This document shows positions 2,633 through 55,902 of a stretch of 60,519 nucleotides of DNA, piece after piece. The first letter of the stretch is position 1. Each line of letters opens with the position of its first letter. The translations under genes were made by a program, and so were the position numbers. The notes beneath the pieces are model-generated. The model searched no databases. It was not told the DNA's origin and saw nothing but the letters and a program-made list of their open reading frames with translations. Source of the DNA: Ministeria vibrans ATCC 50519 (Eukaryota; Protista; Filasterea); contig CALSCP010002675.1 of assembly GCA_943704425.1 (NCBI GenBank), forward strand, positions 43,709 through 104,227. The letters are read 5' to 3'.

Positions 2633-3589
2633 ATGGCCTGGCGATCGCACGGGCGCGACAACGCCGACCTGATAGCACAACTTCAAGGTGTGTAAAAAAA
2701 AAAACAAAAAAATATATTTCACTCTCTCTCCTTCGGAACAGCAAACGGAATCATTAAGACCGACTGCGTTGCCAGGGCCATGCGTCAGGTTGATCGCGCG
2801 GATTACGTGAAACGCGGCAGGGCCTACGAGGATGCTCCTCAGTCGATAAGGTGGAGTGAACTTGAGAGTGAGTTGATCGTCAACGCAAACAGTCCTCATC
2901 AGCTGTGCTTCTTCACACAGCTACAATGTGACCATATCAGCACCACATATGCACGCGTATGCCCTTGAGAGTCTCTGCGAGCATTGTATCAAACCCAGCG
3001 CCAAAATCTTGGACGTGGGCTCTGGCTCAGGCTATCTTACTGCGTGTCTCGCACTTCTGGGCGAGACCAACGACTCAACCGTTGTCGGTAATGCAACGAG
3101 ACATATTTTGGTGCTATTTGTGTCTCATTCTTTTTGAAGCACAGGCATCGAGCATATTGGCCAACTTGTGGACGAATCGCGTGCCAACGTACGACGTGCT
3201 CACGGCGCTCTTTTGGATTCGAAGCGTGTCATTCTGGTCACTGGCGACGGCCGATTGGGCTTCCCTGACATGGCCCCTTACGATGCAATTCACGTAGGGG
3301 CAGCATCTGAGCGAGAACCAGAAGAGGTACATCAAGTGAAGGGGAGAAGCAAACAAACAAAAAAAAAAACGAGAGGCGAAATTGTTTTGAGTTTCTTGCA
3401 TTGCAGTTGATCGGACAACTTGCGCCTGGGGGGCGTCTCTTTGTGCCGGTGGGAACCCACGACCAGTCGATCATTGTGTACGACCGAGCGCCCAACGAGC
3501 CTTTTGCTGTGACACGCACTCCAATCATGGGCGTGCGCTACGTACCACTGACGGATCGAGATTCCCAAATTAATCGGCGCGGCTTGTGA
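2633..3589 (+). CDS. PCMT1: Protein-L-isoaspartate O-methyltransferase, multi-exon
   Basis: [92 protein letters not shown]. Confidence 0.95.
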
Positions 3590-4129
3590 AAACTGAACCG
3601 TGAGGAAAAGATACATCTCCGTCTTAAAGCTGAGAAAGAATGTCATAGTAGTGAAACTAACAATATAAAATAGAATACGAATACTGTATATACAAAAAAG
3701 TTTAATACATACAAAACTTGCAAGAGGAAAACTGTGTGTGAAACAACGAACAGTTGTCAAAGACCCCATTGGCTTTCCCGCCTCCGTCTTCCAGGAACGC
3801 ACATGAACCACTCGCATCACATCATGAGACAGACCAGCAGTCGACATCATCCATAGTTCCCTTGACTCTGCTCCACACTTTGACTGCCATGTGACTTGCT
3901 CCAGCGTGCTATAATGTGTTTCCATCTCGCTACAATAAAGTGAAGCAGAGACAAAGCACAATAAGGTACAGTCTGCCTTGGGAGGAAACGTAGGCACCTC
4001 CAGGCGTGTCTCGCATCTCCAAGGTCACCTGACGCTTGATGCACGGAGCGTTCCGTGAAGGGTCTGACTATGTGTCATGTTTTGACTGATTGTGCAGTCT
4101 TCCAGAAGAGCATTACCAGCAAGTCTGCT

Positions 4130-7100
4130 CTACACACCGTCCTGTTCCGCCACATCCGCAAACTTGCCTAACTCGTCTTTAAGTAGCTTGCGTATGAACA
4201 ACCCTTCCTGCGTGAAATTCTTCGGCGCCACCGAGTGATTGGAGTGGGTCATGATGAGAGCAATGTGCCGACGAGCAAATGCAACCTGATCGGGGTGGTG
4301 GCAGCTCGCATTGTGCAACAACCGCTCCCGCATCGGCTGCGTCGATGCCAAAAACTGGTCCACGTCAATACCACATTGACGCAGAACAACCTCCCGAAAG
4401 CGAGGATGCGACGGAGGTATGGACGAGAGGGCTATCACCTCAACTTCGGCGTCAGAAAGCTCCATGCTGCTGCTGTTGCTGCTGCTCCTCGGTGCCTCGT
4501 CGGGTGTTGTCTTTGTCGCTGTTTCGTCTGCTGCTGCTGCCTTCGGTGTGGCGGTCGCGTCAGCGTTTGAAGTCACTGCAACAGTTGGCGCTGAGGCGGC
4601 AGTGGCATCTACGACTGTACCACTCTTGACGGCAGTGGAGACACCCTCTAGACGTGTGGATGGTGGCGGTGGTAGTGTGGAGTTCTTGGGCGCAACAGAC
4701 GACTCGGCCAAGAGAATCCTCGAGAGCTTGGACGCCTCGTAGATGACGCCGTAAAGAGACGTTTTTTGCTTCGGTTTCCAAAAACGCACCCAACGACCGC
4801 CCGACAGCTCCGCCTCAAATGTCAACACCACGCCATCACCCTCCGAGAGCCCCTGTGCATTGTGCATGACGATCTTGTAGAGCCGTGCCGCAGGCGAGTC
4901 TTCATTCAGGGCCTTCTCCACAGCAATCTCCACCACGGTTCCCGCGTCAATCAGCTTGCGAACGTGATCGTTAGGCATGGGCCGCTTCGACACAATGTGT
5001 ACAATCGAAGGCCAGTCCTTGACGTTCGCCACACATGACTTGTCGGCGCTCGAAAAGATGCGAAATGCCACGGCAATCGTAGCCTTTTCCGACAGAGTCG
5101 CATACTGTTCCACACCCTTGAGTACACTGAGCGTCTGCTTACCCAGCGCAAGTCGGACACGGCAAAGTGGCACCGAGCGATTCTCAGTGTCCACAGGCTT
5201 CTGCGACATTTCGTTGTGCACCTTGGCCTCCAGAGACATCTCACGCAAAGAATCAGTCGGCAGCATGTCGCTCACATACACAGCGTGCACGTACTCAGCA
5301 GGTATCTTGCGTGATTCATACACATTGGGCAGAGCCTCCGTGGGATCCGACGTGGCTTGGAGCGTGCGCACGGGTTTAGACTTGGACTGAAGCGCCAATG
5401 CTCGCTCAAACTTTTCAACAACGGCAAGAGCGCCATCTTCAGGCCACACGTCGCACAAATCACCAGTGAGATTGGACACAGACTCGCTCCTTGGCAAAGA
5501 GCCCTTCTCCGAGATGGCCACAGCACGGCGATAGTACTCGCTGGCACGAGTGTAGTCGCCTTGTGCCTTGAGCACAGCACCCATGCAGCTTAGGGTGTTA
5601 CCCGTGTCTCGGTGGTCGGCGCCCAAGGACTTCTCTTGGATGACGAGAGCATGCTTATAGTTCTCCAGAGCACGTGCGTACTCCGTTTGTTCGCGGTACA
5701 CATCGCCAATGTGCTTCAATGCAGTGCCGCTGGACAAGTTCTGGCGGCCAAGTGCCTTATTAAAAACGCCCAAAGCACGCTCGAGGAACTCCAGAGCACG
5801 CGAAAAATCTCGTTGATGCTGAAGCACTCTAGCTATGTGGCTCAACGTATCGCCTGTGTCTGGGTGGTTGGGACGAGGAGACTTCTCATACATCGCCAAA
5901 GCACGCTCAAAGTACGCGAGAGCACGACTGTCGTCTCTCTCCGCCTCAAACACACCAGCAATAATGCACAGTATCTGTCCGGTGGACGCTTCAACAACGG
6001 AGCCGGTCAATTTCATAGGATTTGGTCGGCCCAACGCAAAGAATTCGACGGCGCGAGAGTACATTCCTGCCACTTTGAACACAACAATCATGTTTTTCAA
6101 CGTGTGAACCGTGTCGGGGTGGGAAAGGCCAATGGATTTCTCAAGGACAGCCAAAGCACGCTCGTAGTAATCGAGAGCACGCTTGTGTGCTCCTTGCACA
6201 AGGAACACAGCAGCCATGTTGTTCAATGTGCCGCCTGTGGATGGGTGGTCGGGACCAACAGACTTCTCATGGATGGCCAGAGCACGCTCATAGTACTCAA
6301 GAGCACGACTGTAGTCTCCTTGTGCCTGGAACACACCAGCAAGGTTGTCCAATGTGTCGCCTGTGGATGGGTGGTCGGGACCAACAGACTTCTCACAGAT
6401 GGTCAGAGCACGCTCATAGTACTCAAGTGCACGACTGTAGTCTCCTTGTGCCTGGAACACACGCGCCATGTTGTTCAATGTGTTGCTTGTGGATGGGTGG
6501 TCGGGACCAAGAGACTTCTCACGGATGGTCAGAGCACGCTCATAGTACTCCAGCGCACGACTGTAGTCTCCTTGTGCTGAGAACACACCAGCCATGTTGT
6601 TCAATGTGCTGCCTGTGGATGGGTGGTCGGGACCAAGAGACTTCTCATGGATGGCCAGAGCACGCTCATAGTACTCAAGAGCACGACTGTAGTCTCCTTG
6701 TGCCTGGAACACACCAGCCATGTTGTTCAATATGTCGCCTGTGGATGGGTGGTCGGAACCATGAGTCTTCTCACGGATGGTCAGAGCACGCTCAGAGTAC
6801 TCCAGCGCACGACTGTAGTCTCCTTGTGCTTGGAACACACTCGCCATGTTGTTGAATGTGTCCCCTGTGAATGGGTGGTCGTAACCTAGAGAGGTCTTAC
6901 GGATGTCCAGAGCACGCTCATAGTACTCAATAGCACGACTGTAGTCTCCCTGTGCCTCGAACACACGCGCCATGTTGTTCAACGTATCACCCAAACAGGA
7001 CGGATGAATAGACGTCGCCGAGAGCTGCTGGATGCTCATCAAACGCTCGTTGAGTTGCAGGGCACGGCTGTACTCGCTCAATTCACACAGAACATTGACC

Positions 7101-9497
7101 ATGTTGTTCAACGTTTCACAAGTTGACGGATGGTCGGGACCAAGACAACTCTCCTTGATGGTCAGGGCACGCTCATAGTACTCAAGAGCACGACCGTAAA
7201 CTCGTCTTGCCTCGAAGACAAAAGCGATGCGATGACAGGTCTTACCCATCTCCTCACCGCCAATGCTCGACTGCTCTTCTTGAATCGCAAGTGCCTGGCC
7301 ATACACCGCCAATGCTCGCAAGTAGTCACTCTGACGCTCGCACACATCACCCAATGAGACCAGTGCGTGTGCTCCCAACACACACTCCTTGTCATACACA
7401 CATTCACATGCGCTCTCAGCCGCAATCCTTGCCAAATGAAACAGTGCCAACGTCTTCCACATCTCACTCAACCGGACACTCAACCAAACAACATCCGCAT
7501 ACTGCTCCGTCTCACCACCCCTCCGCCTTCTCTCCACCTCAGCACACGCCCGATCCATCACTCGCATTCCATGCACTCCCACTTGTCGTCTCCACTCCAC
7601 ATCCTGATGAATATTTGCACCATCGCCAACCTCCTCCTGCAACACTCTTCCCACCCTCCGCAACTCACTCCACATCTCCTCCTCATCTCCAAATGCCACC
7701 ATCCGACACACATCCTGTACCAACGGATGCATCAAAACCACACCCCCATGAACATCTACCACTGACACTCGACACAGCGCTCCGAGTGCAACATCAAACG
7801 CATCCTCATCCGCCTCCTCCTCCTTCTTCCTCTGGCCCATCACCAGCAATCGCAACACCTCCACTTCCATTCCACCCCCTTCCAGAAATCCCATCACTCC
7901 AACCATCTTTTGCACCATCTCCTTCCCTCCAATCTCCATCGCTCGCGCCAAACTCGGCTCGTACGTCGCCACCACTCGATCTTCTAATCCTCCTCCTCCA
8001 CTCCTCTTCTTCAACGCCTTCAATCTGTCTGCCTCAATCCGTGCGCGATACTCTCCAGCACTCACATGTGGCGTCGCTGCCAGATACGCTGTTGCCAAGT
8101 CAAGCGCCAATGGTATTCCTCCCAACTGCTCAACAATCGTCTTCAACTCCTCATCTTCGCCTCCTCGCTCGGGCAATCGCTTCCTCATGAACTCCATTCT
8201 TTCCTCCTCATCAAATACCCCCAACTCCACCGGTGCGTCTAACAACGCCCCCAATTCATCCACTCTCTGCAATCGTGTCGTCACAACCATCTTTCCCTCC
8301 ATCACTCCACCGGGCATCATCGTCTTCATCTCGTCTGTGATCACATCACATCCGTCCACCACCATCAACCATCCTCGTTCGTGCGCCAGCCATTCCTTCA
8401 CTGCCGCCACCACCTCATCGTCCTTCGCATTCCTTGCGTCTACATGATTAAGTGGGATGTACCGCACTGCCTCCCGATACGATCCCATCATCGTCGTCGC
8501 ACTCGTTCCCTGCACCCAAATCACCGAGTGGTACTCATGCGCATTCCGTCGCGCATATTCCGCCGCCAATGTGCTCTTCCCCAATCCGCCCGCAGCAGAT
8601 ATCGTCACGTTCCCACTCTGCTTCAATCGCGCCTCCAACTGCCTCAACTCCTTCTCGCGTCCCGTGAAACTTGCCGGCACAGCAGGCACCATGGCCAGCC
8701 TGTCACGCGCCTTATACTGGTTGAGAAACAACAGAAACTCCCCCGTGTTGTGAGACGCACGCCAGGGTAATCGTGATGAAAAACACGATTGACGAAAGTA
8801 GTCGAAGCTGTCGCCTGGGTAGGCAAGTCGGGTGTTGGCGATAATGGTCCTCATTTCCACATTGACTCGGTCTGCGAGAGCGCCTACCGTCACCCAGTCC
8901 GGCGCGGAAACGCCACTTGTTGGACTCCAAAGAGCGCGGCGCAGAGCAGAGTGCAGAAGGGTGCCGTTTCCCAGCGCGAACGAGGAGCTGGGTCCAATAC
9001 AGGAAGCGAGGCACTGATAGCTAGGCTGCTCGCTGTCGAGCGGTGCCATCATAGCCGCATCATCGCCGGGCTGAATGCGGAGGCACACATCAAGAGGCTC
9101 ACTCGACTCGAGCGCCGCACCTGAATGACACGTGTCGAGTATGACCAAAACGTTTCGCCAAGGTGTCTGACGGTCCTCGACGCCAAGGGAATCTCGAAGC
9201 ATGTCGAGGTTGTAGAGGCCAGAGTGAGTCTCTCGCGACACGTCGTACTTTTTGCTGCCGAGCGCAATACCAAATCGCTTGTCGCCGTCAAAAACTCCCC
9301 GACCAACAAAGGCAACAACGAGCTCGGCGCGCTGCAAGCCAGCAACGCGTGCGTTCGCTTCCTCACAGACAAGATGAATCTTCTCGTGCGTGGCACCGTG
9401 AGGCAACCACACCAGCTGTCCACTTCGCATTGCGTCTTCCAGCACCTTGTCGTCATCAACGTTGCGTCGCCACTGCTCGCCTTGGGTATTATCGTCG

Positions 9498-9528
<31 letters not shown>

Positions 9529-10552
9529 CGTCGTCGTCGTCGTCCTTGCAGCTGCCTGAGTCGGTATCACAGAGAACAGTAACGTAGAAGCCTAGAAGGA
9601 TGAGGTCGACTGCGAGTTTCCGGAGGCCTCCTGCCACGCCCGAAATGGTCGGCAAGCCGTCTGTCGTCTTGTCGAATTTGATGCGGCTGAACAACAGTGC
9701 CAGGCGGCAGGTTGGAGGTGAGCGTGGGGGCAGAATTGTGCTGATGGTGGATCTGGTGTCGTGGAAGAAAGGATCGGGAAAAGAAAAAAAGAACTCGCCA
9801 GGATGGAGCGAGTGGTGCCATGGAAGTTGCGAGAAGGCAATCTGGATGCCATCGTTGGTGGCGTTGATGCTCTCGACAAACTCTGACAGGAACATCTGAT
9901 TTGTTCGCCCAATCTGCGAAGCGAACGCGTGTGCAAAGACAGAGCCGGCCTCTCTCCTCATGGAAGGGTCGGACGTGACCCAAATGCACTGAAGCACCTT
10001 GCCTAGGGACAGGCGTTGGCGTTCCAGCAAGTTCGTTTGTGCTCTACAGCGAATGTTCGTGATGAAATTGAGTTGACGTCTCATCAATGTATTTATTTGC
10101 TCTTACGCGAGTGCCAGTGGCGTGGTGGCAAAGCAAGGTTCCAGGCCAAGTGGGTTGGACGAGTGGGACAGCGCGAACACCAACAACATTTGGTCAAACG
10201 AGGCCGCTAATTGCATGTCTCGCACTAAGTCGCGCGGCGAGAAATTCGCGTGGAAGAAGTCTGCGTCACCAAGCAAGACGAGCACAAAGCGATCGATGGG
10301 GGTTGGGTCAGTGGGCGACAACGTGGCGACGCGGCTTATCGCATGAAAAAGGCTCGCACGAGTGGTCCTTGAATGGGCGAGAACTACTGTCGGATACAAA
10401 GGAGAAGTAGGCGGCACGGGACACTGCAGGACAGTGAAAGAGCCTCGAGAAGCAAGCCGGCTGGCAAAGAGCGCGGCGGTGTCCGTCTCGGCTTGGGTTT
10501 GGGAAAGAGCACAAACGACAGCGTACAAACGCGAAGGAGCGCCGGTGGACAT
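4130..10552 (-). CDS. NLR-like STAND protein: degenerate caspase fold + caspase (C14-like) fold + NB-ARC + TPR array + unknown C-terminal region
   Basis: Exon 1 (ATG 10552 to 10107) splices in frame over a 63-nt GT-AG intron (10044-10106) into the 1985-aa ORF. Motifs: VILDTCHSG (caspase-type Cys), Walker A AAGGLGKST, Walker B WLMVVDGCD, GGIPLAL, LMHPLVQD (MHD-like) and 42-aa TPR repeats. The start codon is uncertain. Confidence 0.85.
6190..6990 (-). repeat. Coding tandem array of 126-bp (42-aa) near-identical TPR units
   Basis: GGATGGGTGGTCGG recurs with 126-bp period (about 6239, 6365, 6491, 6617, 6743; a variant near 6869). Protein unit HPSTGxTLNNMAxVFxAQGDYSRALEYYERALxIxEKSLGPD. Confidence 0.95.
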
Positions 10553-11188
10553 GCTTGATCTGCTCTTGTGTATGATTTTTAAGGCACGCTGGTTTGCCAC
10601 GGGTAAAAGTAGCGTGAGCGACTAACAGTGAAAGAGCAAAAAAGAATTAATTTTTTTTTCGTCAGTCGACACAGACGACTCTTTGTTGGACGAATAGTTG
10701 GATATATTCCATACATACTCCGTATCTTCTTATACTCTCAAGTCTTAACTGCCAACTGGGATGTGGTAACTTCATTGGTCATTTAATTGAGAGTCACAAA
10801 TACGCGATTATCAGACTCTGAATTTTTTCGACAATTCCTTCGACCAAAACGAAAAAAACTGCTTTTTGTGAAACTGCTTTTGCAAGAAACTTGCACTAAC
10901 ATCCTAAGTAGACTGTAGATACTCACTAGTCACTAGTGAGCAGTGTGTTGATGAATGTGGTTTGTCCGATGGCGCACCCTCTTGTTATCTGTTTATTTGA
11001 TGACATGAATGTACAAAAGAAATACGGAGATTACATTATATTATAGAGAGTCGGGACTGAAAACGCTCTCTGTCCCACGCAAAGCGCATGACTCACATAC
11101 CCTCCTCCTGCCTAACCTCCCATAAAGTAAGTGAGTACATAGACATTCATTTAAAAACTGTGTGTGTGTATACCTTATAGCCTTTTCC

Positions 11189-36996: not shown

Positions 36997-53342
<16,346 letters not shown>

Positions 53343-53482: not shown

Positions 53483-55027
53483 TTACACTATATCAACGTC
53501 GTCCGCCTCATCGACAAACCTCCTTCGCTGTGCCTCATCTTCGGAGGAAAGTTTCTGCTGGCGTTGCGCCTCCTCGTTGGTGTTTTTCAACTCAGTTTCG
53601 CCATGGGTGTCGCCTTCGCTGGCCATCTGGTAGTGCGAGGTGGCGGCAAAGTCGGTGTGGCTGCAGTTGTCTTCTTCGTCGCTGTCCATTTCGCTGTCCA
53701 TTGCACAGCTCAAGGAGAGGCGCGACGGCTTTCTTCGTGTCGACCGTCGCATGCTCGCTAAGCCATCGTCAAGACAGTCCGCTTCGTCGATGTCGTCGTT
53801 CTCATCGTCATCGATGTCGTCGTCGTCGTCGTCGTCGTCGTCGCTCGTGTCGTCTCGCATAGCTCGCTTACTGGAGCGAATAGGCGGGATAGTACTGGGT
53901 ATTTCGGGGAGCAAGACTGGATGGATGGGAGGCTTGCCAGCGTTCTTTTGACGCCCGCGCCATCGAAAGCCCAATATCTCGAGTTTGTTGTAACGCGACG
54001 GAATAAGTTTGAGGGCACGGTGAGCACGTCGCTGCGTACGGACCCACTCGGCGAGCGACTGGTTGGACGGGTAGATGCGGGGGACGTTGGTGTGGCCATA
54101 TTCATTTTGGAAGTCTTCCAGCTCGGACAAGCGTCGCAGCCACTGCTCCTCGGCCCGAGCGACGGGGTAGACGTTTTGCGTCTCTAGAGAGTGGTCTGAT
54201 GGTGCAGTGGGTGGGGGGGTGATCGGTTGTGCCACCGTCGTTTGGTTGTCGGTATTTGACGTCGAATTGCGGTTGACGAGACTGGTCTTCGGATTCTCAG
54301 TCTTCAGCGACTGAGGAGCATCGAGCGGAGCTTTACTGAGACTGGGACTGGGTAGGGATGGCGAGGGAGCGGCTGCTGCGGTCGTCGTCAATGGGTCGAG
54401 CGACGCGAGCACTTTCGGGTCATCATCATCCATTGAGGGCGCTTTCAACGGGCACAGCGGCAGCATAGGCGCACGCATAGGTACAAACGACGAGGTTTTC
54501 GCGGTAGACACGTGTGGCGCGGAGGAAAGTGAAGCTGGCGCCATACGCGATTTTTTCAAAGGATGTTCGTGAGTTAAACTCGCAATTGCGGTGCGTTTTT
54601 CACGTGGAGGAACTGCGCCCGTCAGCGGTTGTGGCGGTGACACAGACGGCTGGCACTGGGAAGATGGATAAACTACTGGCTCGGGCAGAGGGACGGTGGG
54701 AGTGAAGGCGTCGGGAGCGACAGGATAAGCAAGAGACGAGAGAGGCTGAGAAGCGAAAGAGGATGGGAAATGGCCAAAAGAGGGATATGAAAATTTTGGT
54801 GGCTCAGGCTGAGTGAAAACCGGGTGTTGGCCCGGCGCGGCAGCCGGCTGGAGCAGCGGAGGAGGAATGAATGCGCCTGGTGGTTGAACGTAGCCAGGAA
54901 ATGGCGCGACCATCTGGTACGATGGAGGAAAACTTTGAAAGGACGAAGGAGAGAACATTGACGAACCGTCAACAAACATATATCCTGGCGGGGGAACTGC
55001 GCCGCCATGGGATGCGCCGTAGTTCAT
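53483..55027 (-). CDS. Pro-rich protein with one helicase-associated (HA) domain and an acidic tail; possible DNA-binding regulator
   Basis: WLRRLSELEDFQNEYGHTNVPRIYPSNQSLAEWVRTQRRAHRALKLIPSRYNKLEILGFRW fits the HA-domain pattern (W..L..F...GH..VP....LG.WV..QR.....L...R...L..+GF.W). Confidence 0.75.
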   Translation of the reverse strand: MNYGASHGGAVPPPGYMFVDGSSMFSPSSFQSFPPSYQMVAPFPGYVQPPGAFIPPPLLQPAAAPGQHPVFTQPEPPKFSYPSFGHFPSSFASQPLSSLAYPVAPDAFTPTVPLPEPVVYPSSQCQPSVSPPQPLTGAVPPREKRTAIASLTHEHPLKKSRMAPASLSSAPHVSTAKTSSFVPMRAPMLPLCPLKAPSMDDDDPKVLASLDPLTTTAAAAPSPSLPSPSLSKAPLDAPQSLKTENPKTSLVNRNSTSNTDNQTTVAQPITPPPTAPSDHSLETQNVYPVARAEEQWLRRLSELEDFQNEYGHTNVPRIYPSNQSLAEWVRTQRRAHRALKLIPSRYNKLEILGFRWRGRQKNAGKPPIHPVLLPEIPSTIPPIRSSKRAMRDDTSDDDDDDDDDIDDDENDDIDEADCLDDGLASMRRSTRRKPSRLSLSCAMDSEMDSDEEDNCSHTDFAATSHYQMASEGDTHGETELKNTNEEAQRQQKLSSEDEAQRRRFVDEADDVDIV

Positions 55028-55902
55028 TTGGAAAGGAGACGTCGAGGGGAGGCGAATAAAAAATAGTTTGCACTTTGCGCGAGCAGTTGAGGAAAAGAAA
55101 TAAGAAGACAAACAAGCGAGGAGAGAAAAAAAAGAAAAAAAAAAAAAGAGAGAAAAAAAATAGAATGGACAATTTGGTCGGGAAACGTACGATTCTTTGC
55201 GATACCACGACTGCCAGGCGGCTCTGTAGTAGTATAGCTACACGCTATGACGCAACAAAGCTCGCAACATCTCCCAGGGTCGCCGTGCTTCGTTTTTGAA
55301 TGTTTTTTTTTAATTCATCATAAGCCCACTCAGAGAGAGATAGAATCCACACAGAAAAAGTCCGATAAAAACGAACAACGGATACTAACGAACCAGCTCT
55401 TGGGCAATACTGGTCTATATCATGATTAATGAGCTCATGTGTTATTGTGGATGCATGATTGACGGGGTTTCTCATCCTGACGAGCCTCGAAAGTCAAAAT
55501 CAAAAAAAATCGAGCTCAGAAGAATTACAGAAAATCATTAGCGTTCAAATAACCCATTGTTTACGGACTGTGAGGCACATCCCTGCCCTATTACGAATGT
55601 ATGTTATAACAACTTGCCACTTAGGAAACAAACGCGAAGCTTTAGTCGCAATTTCTCGCAGCAGTGGCGTTTTCTTTTTCTTTTTTTTTTTGTGTCATGA
55701 GTTTTTTTTCGTTTCTTTCGCATTTAGTGATGAGCACTTCATGAGCACTAGCCATCTTGTAGGTCCGCGTCAAGCAACGTCTCAATTTACTCTCTCAAAG
55801 TTACGTTTGGCCCTCAGGGGACCCTCAGGCCCTGTGAACCGACGAAATCGATTGTTTGGAAATTGTGTGTACTAAAAGTTTACTCCATCTGCCCCCCCCC
55901 CC

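Follow-up and report, generated by a model that had tools for sequence, protein, structure and literature searches.

A candidate pseudo-caspase fused to NB-ARC and TPR modules in an expressed, NLR-like mosaic gene of the filasterean Ministeria vibrans

A stretch of 60,519 nucleotides from the genome of the filasterean Ministeria vibrans ATCC 50519 (assembly GCA_943704425.1, contig CALSCP010002675.1, positions 43,709 to 104,227 of the forward strand; hereafter the window) carries on its minus strand, at positions 4130-10552, a gene that joins a caspase-fold domain, an NB-ARC module and a long array of TPR units in a single predicted chain. Our reading, to which we give a probability of roughly 0.6, is that this is an expressed NLR-like pseudo-caspase mosaic, whose product would act as a non-catalytic partner of its paralogues in cell death or defence. 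The reading is carried by an arginine at the catalytic histidine position of the caspase-fold domain, by the disagreement between the histories of that domain and of the NB-ARC module to which it is fused, and by transcript evidence for the gene.

The caspase-fold domain and its catalytic dyad

The predicted order of domains is a unique N-terminal extension, the caspase-fold domain, NB-ARC, about 15 TPR units and an orphan tail (residue numbers are positions in the 1985-codon open reading frame). This bears out the effector-STAND-repeat organization that a first-pass annotation had proposed for this eukaryotic gene, and the tripartite succession of an effector-like domain, a nucleotide-binding oligomerization domain (NOD) and repeats would make it NLR-type in the broad sense. 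The caspase-fold domain (clan CD, C14-like; residues 127-470, positions 8678-9709, minus strand), delimited from a paralogue alignment, an AlphaFold2 (AF2) model and structure matches, has its p20-like and p10-like parts within one chain and a low-complexity Asp/Asn insert inside.

By itself, the N-terminus of this copy gave no Pfam match, even at E 10, and no sequence match in the PDB. Thus of the Pfam matches foreseen by the first-pass annotation, those to NB-ARC and TPR_10/12 were obtained, while the gathering score of Peptidase_C14 (PF00656) is not reached by this copy. Eight of 12 paralogues do match PF00656 (best E 1.4e-5), and the copies on contigs C1613, C328 and C138 exceed the cut-off. 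The best curated sequence model for the domain is the bacterial NCBIfam model caspase_w_EACC1, which is matched by 14 of 17 family members (best E 2.3e-10; this copy, E 2.4e-5). The consensus of the 12-paralogue alignment contains both SHG and LDTCHSG. When profiles were compared with PDB sequences, that of the first caspase-domain alignment found no match and that of the broader family found weak ones, mostly to caspases (E 0.03-0.5).

The AF2 model of this copy, built on the 12-paralogue alignment, has a mean predicted local distance difference test (pLDDT) score of 60 and a predicted template-modelling (pTM) score of 0.71. Foldseek matched it to caspases and MALT1 with a probability of 1.0 (E 4e-7), and a VIA comparison with caspase-3 gave a Z of 15.2 and a root-mean-square deviation of 4.0 over 211 of 235 residues. 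In a wide search of 48,161 representative chains without the Foldseek pre-filter, 31 chains reached a Z of 8 or more, all of them clan-CD peptidases or caspase-like domains. On the evidence of the model the caspase fold is established, as the first-pass annotation had supposed for the N-terminus, and in this copy it was detectable because the paralogue alignment was used. The best scores of that search (caspases 14.8, MALT1 14.4, metacaspase-4 13.7, bacterial GSU0716 13.3 and the pseudo-caspase domain of c-FLIP 12.4) are effectively tied, and we therefore assign the domain to no caspase sub-family. The earlier suggestion that it resembles bacterial orthocaspases more than animal caspases finds some favour in the caspase_w_EACC1 match and in the DxCHSG form of the cysteine motif, but structure does not discriminate between the two.

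The position of the catalytic cysteine is kept in this copy, as Cys320 (codon 9128-9130) of the motif DTCHSG (9119-9136). The position of the catalytic histidine, which in the alignments reads SHG or AHG in the family and which in a profile match aligns with the SHG of a Drosophila caspase, is occupied by Arg263 (codon 9299-9301, in AFVGRGV). Histidine is found in this column in 18 of the 19 family members examined, arginine only here. A contig of the independent run X1, with no differences from the window over 8457-9490, confirms the substitution; the string VVAFVGRG, quoted in the first-pass annotation as part of a caspase motif, already contained the arginine, which was overlooked. Moreover, at 21 alignment positions where the other 11 members all agree this copy departs from them, the highest count of the 12, while retaining the structural core residues of the caspase fold and 37 family-invariant positions. 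Mutants of caspases and metacaspases that lack the catalytic histidine are inactive. With an incomplete His-Cys dyad, this copy is probably a pseudo-protease and not the self-contained, inflammasome-like sensor-protease that had been proposed for it.

Two relatives have also lost dyad residues. One paralogue on contig C837 is without the catalytic cysteine (LDSSQIG), and a relative from another organism, P0007 (on an ENA metagenome scaffold, L033, gene 321-2357), with a caspase-like domain 34% identical, is without both the histidine and the cysteine, yet retains an NB-ARC with Walker A and B. These two cases, taken with the loss in the present gene, indicate that non-catalytic members recur in the family, and P0007 in particular that pseudo-caspase-STAND fusions exist beyond this genome.

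Within the insert of the caspase-fold domain, a poly-Asn stretch is encoded by a (TTG)8 microsatellite (plus-strand reading; 9504-9528, Tandem Repeats Finder), at which short-read contigs break; reads appear cut over 9491-9555. A Logan protein fragment, P0001, which is 98% identical, shifts frame just past this microsatellite; either a length polymorphism or an error of assembly could account for the change.

A mosaic origin

In its NB-ARC this gene shares 77-88% identity with five paralogues, whereas its caspase-like domain is only 34-39% identical to that of every paralogue; the caspase domains of those same paralogues are 52-92% identical among themselves. In the comparison with a close paralogue, 88% identity in NB-ARC stands beside 37-39% in the caspase domain. 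Along the gene, pairwise identity is 25-50% up to residue ~451 and, stepping up from about 45%, reaches 72-92% from residues ~455-470 onward. Maximum-likelihood trees give this copy a terminal branch of 1.99 in the caspase domain (median 0.24) and of 0.098 in NB-ARC (median 0.067). The downstream copy on contig C837 switches clade between the caspase and NB-ARC trees (support 99/99 versus 93/94). The disagreement of the trees, the identity step at the domain boundary and the third codon positions together imply that the two domains do not share one history, owing to gene conversion or to the exchange of modules between paralogues, and in this respect the earlier description of the gene as “shuffled” was well chosen. 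A relaxation of protein constraint is by itself insufficient to explain the contrast, since the two modules also differ at synonymous sites: where the encoded residue is the same, third codon positions agree in 41% of cases in the caspase domain and in 80.5% in NB-ARC. On these comparisons, the gene is a mosaic of an old, highly divergent, His-less caspase module and an NB-ARC recently held in common with paralogues.

Gene structure and expression

The gene is one two-exon unit. The coding part of exon 1 (10107-10552, minus strand), defined from the open reading frame and by reading the sequence, opens with the ATG at 10552-10550, comprises 148 whole codons plus two bases and forms the start of the N-terminal extension. 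Exon 2 (4130-10043), with the stop codon at 4130-4132, has a continuous frame that requires no additional intron; the open reading frame of 1985 codons, 4130-10087 on the minus strand, is unbroken. Between the exons lies a spliceosomal GT..AG intron of 63 nucleotides (10044-10106), with bounds read by eye (GT at 10106-10105, AG at 10045-10044) and an in-frame TAA inside. Exon 1 ends in GC and exon 2 starts with A, a split codon (GC|A) that preserves the frame of the large open reading frame.

Contigs from public sequencing runs were aligned to 4701-10700 only, and the two exons were searched and folded separately. An X1 contig of 1146 letters covers 9556-10043 and 10107-10700, continuing past 10700 beyond exon 1, and omits exactly the 63 letters of the intron, whose plus-strand ends are CT..AC; the single small intron of the first-pass annotation is thereby confirmed. 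Further X1 contigs are distributed along 4701-10700, save for gaps at repeats, and X20, a poly(A) RNA-seq run from a marine metagenome, provides a 326-letter contig identical to 5090-5415. The gene is real, spliced at the predicted intron and expressed. Its sequence is present in several public runs labelled seawater, marine or algae metagenome.

Apparent joints from 6607 and 6739 to 7274 were considered as splicing and rejected: their ends are not those of introns and lie within repeats, and we read them as a collapse of paralogues or repeats. At the other end of the gene, the X1 contig over 4701-6240 extends for about 1.5 kb beyond the stop codon at 4130 (window 3207-4700), crossing an orphan open reading frame at 3332-3997 (minus strand). 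The extension could be a long 3' untranslated region, read-through into a neighbouring gene or a further exon.

NB-ARC module, TPR array and end extensions

The NB-ARC (AP-ATPase) STAND module occupies residues 470-800 (7688-8680, minus strand), as placed by Pfam, by motif positions and by an 11-paralogue alignment; PF00931 matches residues 478-671 with 47.4 bits against a cut-off of 23.5. Its motifs are all intact and each falls in invariant columns of that alignment: Walker A GGLGKST (8570-8590), Walker B LMVVDG(CD) (8351-8368), the sensor-1 TTR (TTRL, 8270-8281), the GxP motif GGIPLAL (8102-8122) and the MHD-like MHPL (7721-7732). The first-pass annotation had recognized most of this set, with the Walker motifs near the positions found here. 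Against the PDB, the NB-ARC profile matched AfsR (1e-8) and Roq1 (4e-4).

Downstream lies the TPR array (residues 906-1535, 5483-7372, minus strand), about 15 units of 42 amino acids of the TPR_10/TPR_12 type according to Pfam, NCBIfam and a table of the units. The match to Pfam TPR_12 (E 1e-160 over 11 stretches) agrees with the long array reported at the outset; TPR_NPHP3 and MalT-like TPR profiles match as well. The core of the array (6138-6982, Tandem Repeats Finder) is near-identical, with a 126-bp period, 6.7 copies and 88% matches, and the differences between units, counted per position, cluster at positions 3, 10, 13, 30, 32, 36 and 38. Over this core (window 6101-6900) the contigs of three runs reach a summed depth 10-50 times greater than in the flanks and show differences of the paralogue type. 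The raised depth points to paralogous copies, with the TPR core recurring near-verbatim in many genes of the genome.

The extensions at the two ends are less easily placed. The second part of the N-terminal extension, about 112 amino acids (9710-10043, minus strand), was delimited by a match to the family hidden Markov model (HMM) and ends in LPW..GEF, the motif that closes the caspase-like domain of the family. Both exon pieces of the extension give weak, co-linear matches to this HMM (307-323, E 0.005 at Z=1, for the second part). The translation of exon 1 has caspase-domain clusters among its nearest neighbours in ESM features (0.90-0.91), which we take as a lead only. Its single-sequence AF2 model (pLDDT 62) has generic alpha/beta matches of the ferredoxin-like kind (best Z 7.3), caspases not being among them, and a search of exon 1 against its own genome returned only itself. 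For a tandem pseudo-caspase arrangement in the extension, the HMM and ESM matches are thus weak leads. The C-terminal tail, about 450-456 amino acids (4133-5482, minus strand), is contiguous with the end of the TPR array on a contig and includes an Ala/Thr/Ser-rich low-complexity stretch. It has no Pfam match over threshold and only a self-match in the genome, and its best ESM Atlas score, 0.83, is uninformative. Pfam scans of the gene found neither a DNA-binding nor any other output domain.

The paralogous family

In the assembly (29.7 Mb, 2860 contigs) this caspase-like domain is matched at least 36 times, and NB-ARC occurs at 29 or more loci; the two domains stand together in at least 15 open frames, which supplies the paralogue count that the first-pass annotation had called for. 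Three architectures are seen: caspase-NB-ARC-TPR, caspase-NB-ARC-WD40 (contig C138) and a caspase-like domain with LRRs in which no NB-ARC was detected. The family is a lineage-restricted expansion whose NB-ARC proteins carry a caspase-like domain as their usual N-terminal module.

Individual members illustrate this variety. The C138 gene (C138:17000-26500; L031, 2239-7767, minus strand) encodes, in a frame of 1843 amino acids, a Peptidase_C14 domain (Pfam E 3e-6), an NB-ARC (E 8e-31) and WD40 propellers; judged by these domains, its product is Apaf-1-like with a fused, dyad-intact caspase-like domain. Contig C2085 has two caspase-like+NB-ARC genes about 55 kb apart in opposite orientation (41625-43667, plus, and 96741-98783, minus; L022 and L021). 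They are 99.7% identical in the caspase domain and 98.2% in NB-ARC and, being near-identical, are ascribed to a very recent inverted duplication or conversion. On contig C837 (26894-34300; L016) two caspase-like genes stand in tandem: in the upstream frame, of 1468 amino acids, LRRs were detected but NB-ARC was not, while the downstream gene is caspase-NB-ARC.

Outside this genome relatives are few. A search of 1.84 billion representatives gave nine matches, all of them short ENA or Logan contigs and none tied to bacteria. A search of protein clusters for homologues of residues 120-900 found none and the same search with a typical paralogue found three; pattern scans of 185,579 prokaryote genomes and of JGI metagenomes brought up nothing close.

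Comparison with known systems

Multicellular bacteria commonly have fusions of a caspase or metacaspase module to a STAND NTPase with a WD40 or TPR sensor (PMC4986451; PMC3501461; PMC13581612). Like the present gene, these bacterial proteins have in a single chain an N-terminal caspase-fold module, a STAND NTPase and a TPR or WD40 sensor, and direct activation of the effector by oligomerization has been proposed for them (PMC3501461; PMC4986451; PMC13581612). The Ministeria gene differs in being eukaryotic, intron-bearing, part of a large paralogous family and His-less, with unique N- and C-terminal extensions and without a close bacterial homologue in our searches. The model of the FxSxx-COOH system TPR protein (NF040586) is matched well above its cut-off (393.6 bits against 300; residues 467-1081 to positions 1-604 of 830), but the gene is eukaryotic with a spliced intron and outside the bacterial operon context of that system; the match reads as shared NB-ARC-TPR ancestry and not as membership. 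As to bacterial Avs proteins, Avs3a scored 16.6 bits against a cut-off of 2800 and PADLOC returned generic TPR models only.

Candidate receptors of the NB-ARC-TPR kind are known in fungi, Ectocarpus and Acanthamoeba (PMC4986451; PMC3341825; PMC4053784). They share with the present gene the TPR_10/12-type repeats after NB-ARC, lineage-specific expansion, highly similar repeats with few variable positions, and recombination between family members. They differ from it in their N-terminal module, which here has a caspase fold, and, in the case of Ectocarpus, in that the TPR units here are not encoded as one exon per repeat. The excerpts of PMC4986451 mention an N-terminal metacaspase domain for STAND proteins of bacteria alone, and a search by term of PMC3341825 gave no mention of caspases.

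With the Apaf-1/CED-4 apoptosome and the animal inflammasomes the gene has in common an NB-ARC or NACHT switch, a repeat sensor and an output through the proximity of caspase folds. Here, however, the caspase fold is fused and not recruited, and the sensor is made of TPR units and not of WD40 or LRR. Pfam detected no death-fold domain (CARD, Death or Pyrin) in the gene; the N-terminal CARD and WD40 propeller of Apaf-1/CED-4 are likewise absent from it by Pfam, although the C138 paralogue does have NB-ARC-WD40. By sequence, its NB-ARC lies nearer to domains of the AfsR and plant types than to any of the Apaf-1 chains listed. Nor is it an animal NLR in the strict sense (NACHT-LRR with CARD, Death or Pyrin), its NTPase being NB-ARC and its repeats TPR. 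Caspases are among the animal-specific families of Richter et al. (PMC6040629), who found no CARD- or Death-bearing NLRs in choanoflagellates and listed caspases and NLR-to-caspase signalling as animal innovations.

The retention of a caspase fold with an incomplete dyad recalls c-FLIP, whose structural match was given above, and the pseudo-orthocaspases described in bacteria (PMC6426788). In the latter Tyr and Ser stand for His and Cys, whereas here the histidine alone is replaced, in a domain fused to a STAND switch; c-FLIP is without the cysteine and acts via DED adaptors.

In an incomplete literature library we found no report of a eukaryotic caspase-fold-NB-ARC-TPR family. Most descriptions of caspase-STAND fusions to date concern multicellular bacteria (PMC4986451; PMC3501461; PMC13581612), and here there are at least 15 in a eukaryote, Apaf-1-like NB-ARC-WD40 versions included. 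Of greater interest than this gene is the family as a whole, of which the gene is the His-less, recombinant outlier and the clearest candidate both for loss of catalysis and for an exchange of modules among paralogues. The family would offer a tractable system for the direct coupling of a protease to a STAND switch in eukaryotes, for the replacement of fusion by adaptor recruitment and for the origin of pseudo-proteases in receptor families.

Possible mechanism and alternative explanations

The mechanism we envisage starts with the TPR array, which would bind a ligand and thereby release the NB-ARC switch; a nucleotide-dependent oligomerization would then bring caspase-fold domains together (induced proximity). 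In dyad-intact paralogues this could activate the protease directly, as proposed for bacterial caspase-Apaf-1-like proteins. The present copy would be a partner without catalytic activity: it might, for instance, regulate active paralogues as FLIP does, act as their decoy or be a co-oligomerizing sensor, in a pathway that would control cell death or defence. The expansion of the family, the shuffling of its modules and the variability of the repeats can be seen as indirect signs of non-self recognition.

Several points count against this proposal. The AF2 model is mediocre (pLDDT 60), so that the geometry of the active site cannot be judged from it, and we infer the loss of activity through the His-to-Arg change from the enzymology of caspases and metacaspases. 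That X1 is an RNA run is a guess, with the exact skip of the intron as its main sign. The immune or cell-death function is a putative one, argued from the architecture, and hetero-oligomerization with paralogues is speculation. Finally, a Pfam search of the genome for gasdermin (PF04598) found none, the control genomes being equally silent.

If Arg263 were tolerated, or if another histidine (for example, that after Cys320) substituted for the missing one, the protein could still be a competent, self-contained sensor-protease, a one-gene inflammasome. The fold, the cysteine and the 37 family-invariant positions are kept, the architecture is that of the dyad-intact paralogues, and the gene is expressed with its frame intact. 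We nevertheless consider this unlikely, because the general-base histidine is lost in this member alone, because this copy has the most deviations at invariant columns, with a caspase branch 20-fold longer than its NB-ARC branch, and because histidine mutants of the known enzymes are dead. It is similarly improbable that the gene encodes a STAND scaffold with no part in immunity or cell death, acting in development, stress, or ciliary or trafficking processes in the manner of AfsR, MalT or NPHP3, with the caspase fold as an interaction module. The transcriptional regulator AfsR is indeed the best solved sequence relative of the NB-ARC, the TPR_NPHP3 and MalT-like profiles match the array, and the catalytic histidine is lost. 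Yet the family is large and diversifying fast, its modules recombine and its near-identical repeats differ at a few positions, a pattern typical of proteins for non-self recognition (fungal NLRs, PMC4986451) and not of housekeeping regulators, and the scans for a DNA-binding or other output domain were negative.

The mosaic structure, the unique orphan extensions at both ends, the lost histidine, the many deviations and the microsatellite inside the domain might also suggest an expressed chimera produced by recombination between paralogues and decaying towards a pseudogene. This seems very unlikely for a frame that is unbroken over some 6.4 kb, with its intron correctly spliced, its NB-ARC motifs intact and the core residues of the caspase fold preserved. 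Least credible is a recent horizontal transfer of a bacterial caspase-STAND-TPR gene; horizontal acquisition had been entertained by the first-pass annotation. The nearest curated profiles are bacterial (caspase_w_EACC1, FxSxx_TPR above its cut-off, AfsR) and the architecture is common in multicellular bacteria (PMC4986451; PMC3501461; PMC13581612), but the few relatives outside the genome are not tied to bacteria, the prokaryote and JGI scans were equally barren, and a spliced intron, a eukaryote-like GC content and more than 15 diverged paralogues all speak against it. A recent transfer is thus unsupported by the sequences at hand; an ancient one may have taken place.

Beyond the non-catalytic partner that we favour for this gene, a bolder proposal, which we regard as doubtful, concerns the whole repertoire. 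The expanded set of single-chain caspase-fold-NB-ARC-(TPR/WD40) proteins in a unicellular relative of animals might represent, in a living organism, a stage between the caspase-Apaf-1 proteins of bacteria and the apoptosome or inflammasome of animals. Recombination between paralogues would have made in them a division of labour between dyad-intact executioners and His-less regulators or sensors, the present gene among them, that modulate the executioners by co-oligomerization, and a FLIP-like or sensor/helper logic would then predate animals.

Neighbouring genes and other observations

The neighbours of the gene are a metallo-beta-lactamase-fold gene and an orphan open reading frame. Elsewhere in the genome, no LHC genes were found, thymidylate synthase (three exons) and DHFR are unfused and on different contigs (C1168:138137-139216, C2542:97-345, C761:32803-32961), and there are at least three integrin-beta genes (C749, C376, C2390). 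The window also has, on its minus strand, an open reading frame with a helicase-associated (HA, PF03457) domain at 53486-55111 and one of 2033 amino acids with at least 23 EGF repeats at 36997-43098, with PMT and NOMO-like genes nearby. The gene content fits a non-photosynthetic unicellular holozoan; a stramenopile or an alga, to which the HA domain and the marine or algal labels of the runs might have pointed, was rejected on the missing LHC genes, the unfused DHFR and thymidylate synthase and the presence of integrin beta. To judge from their predicted products, these genes of the window together show an animal-like extracellular toolkit in a small genome.

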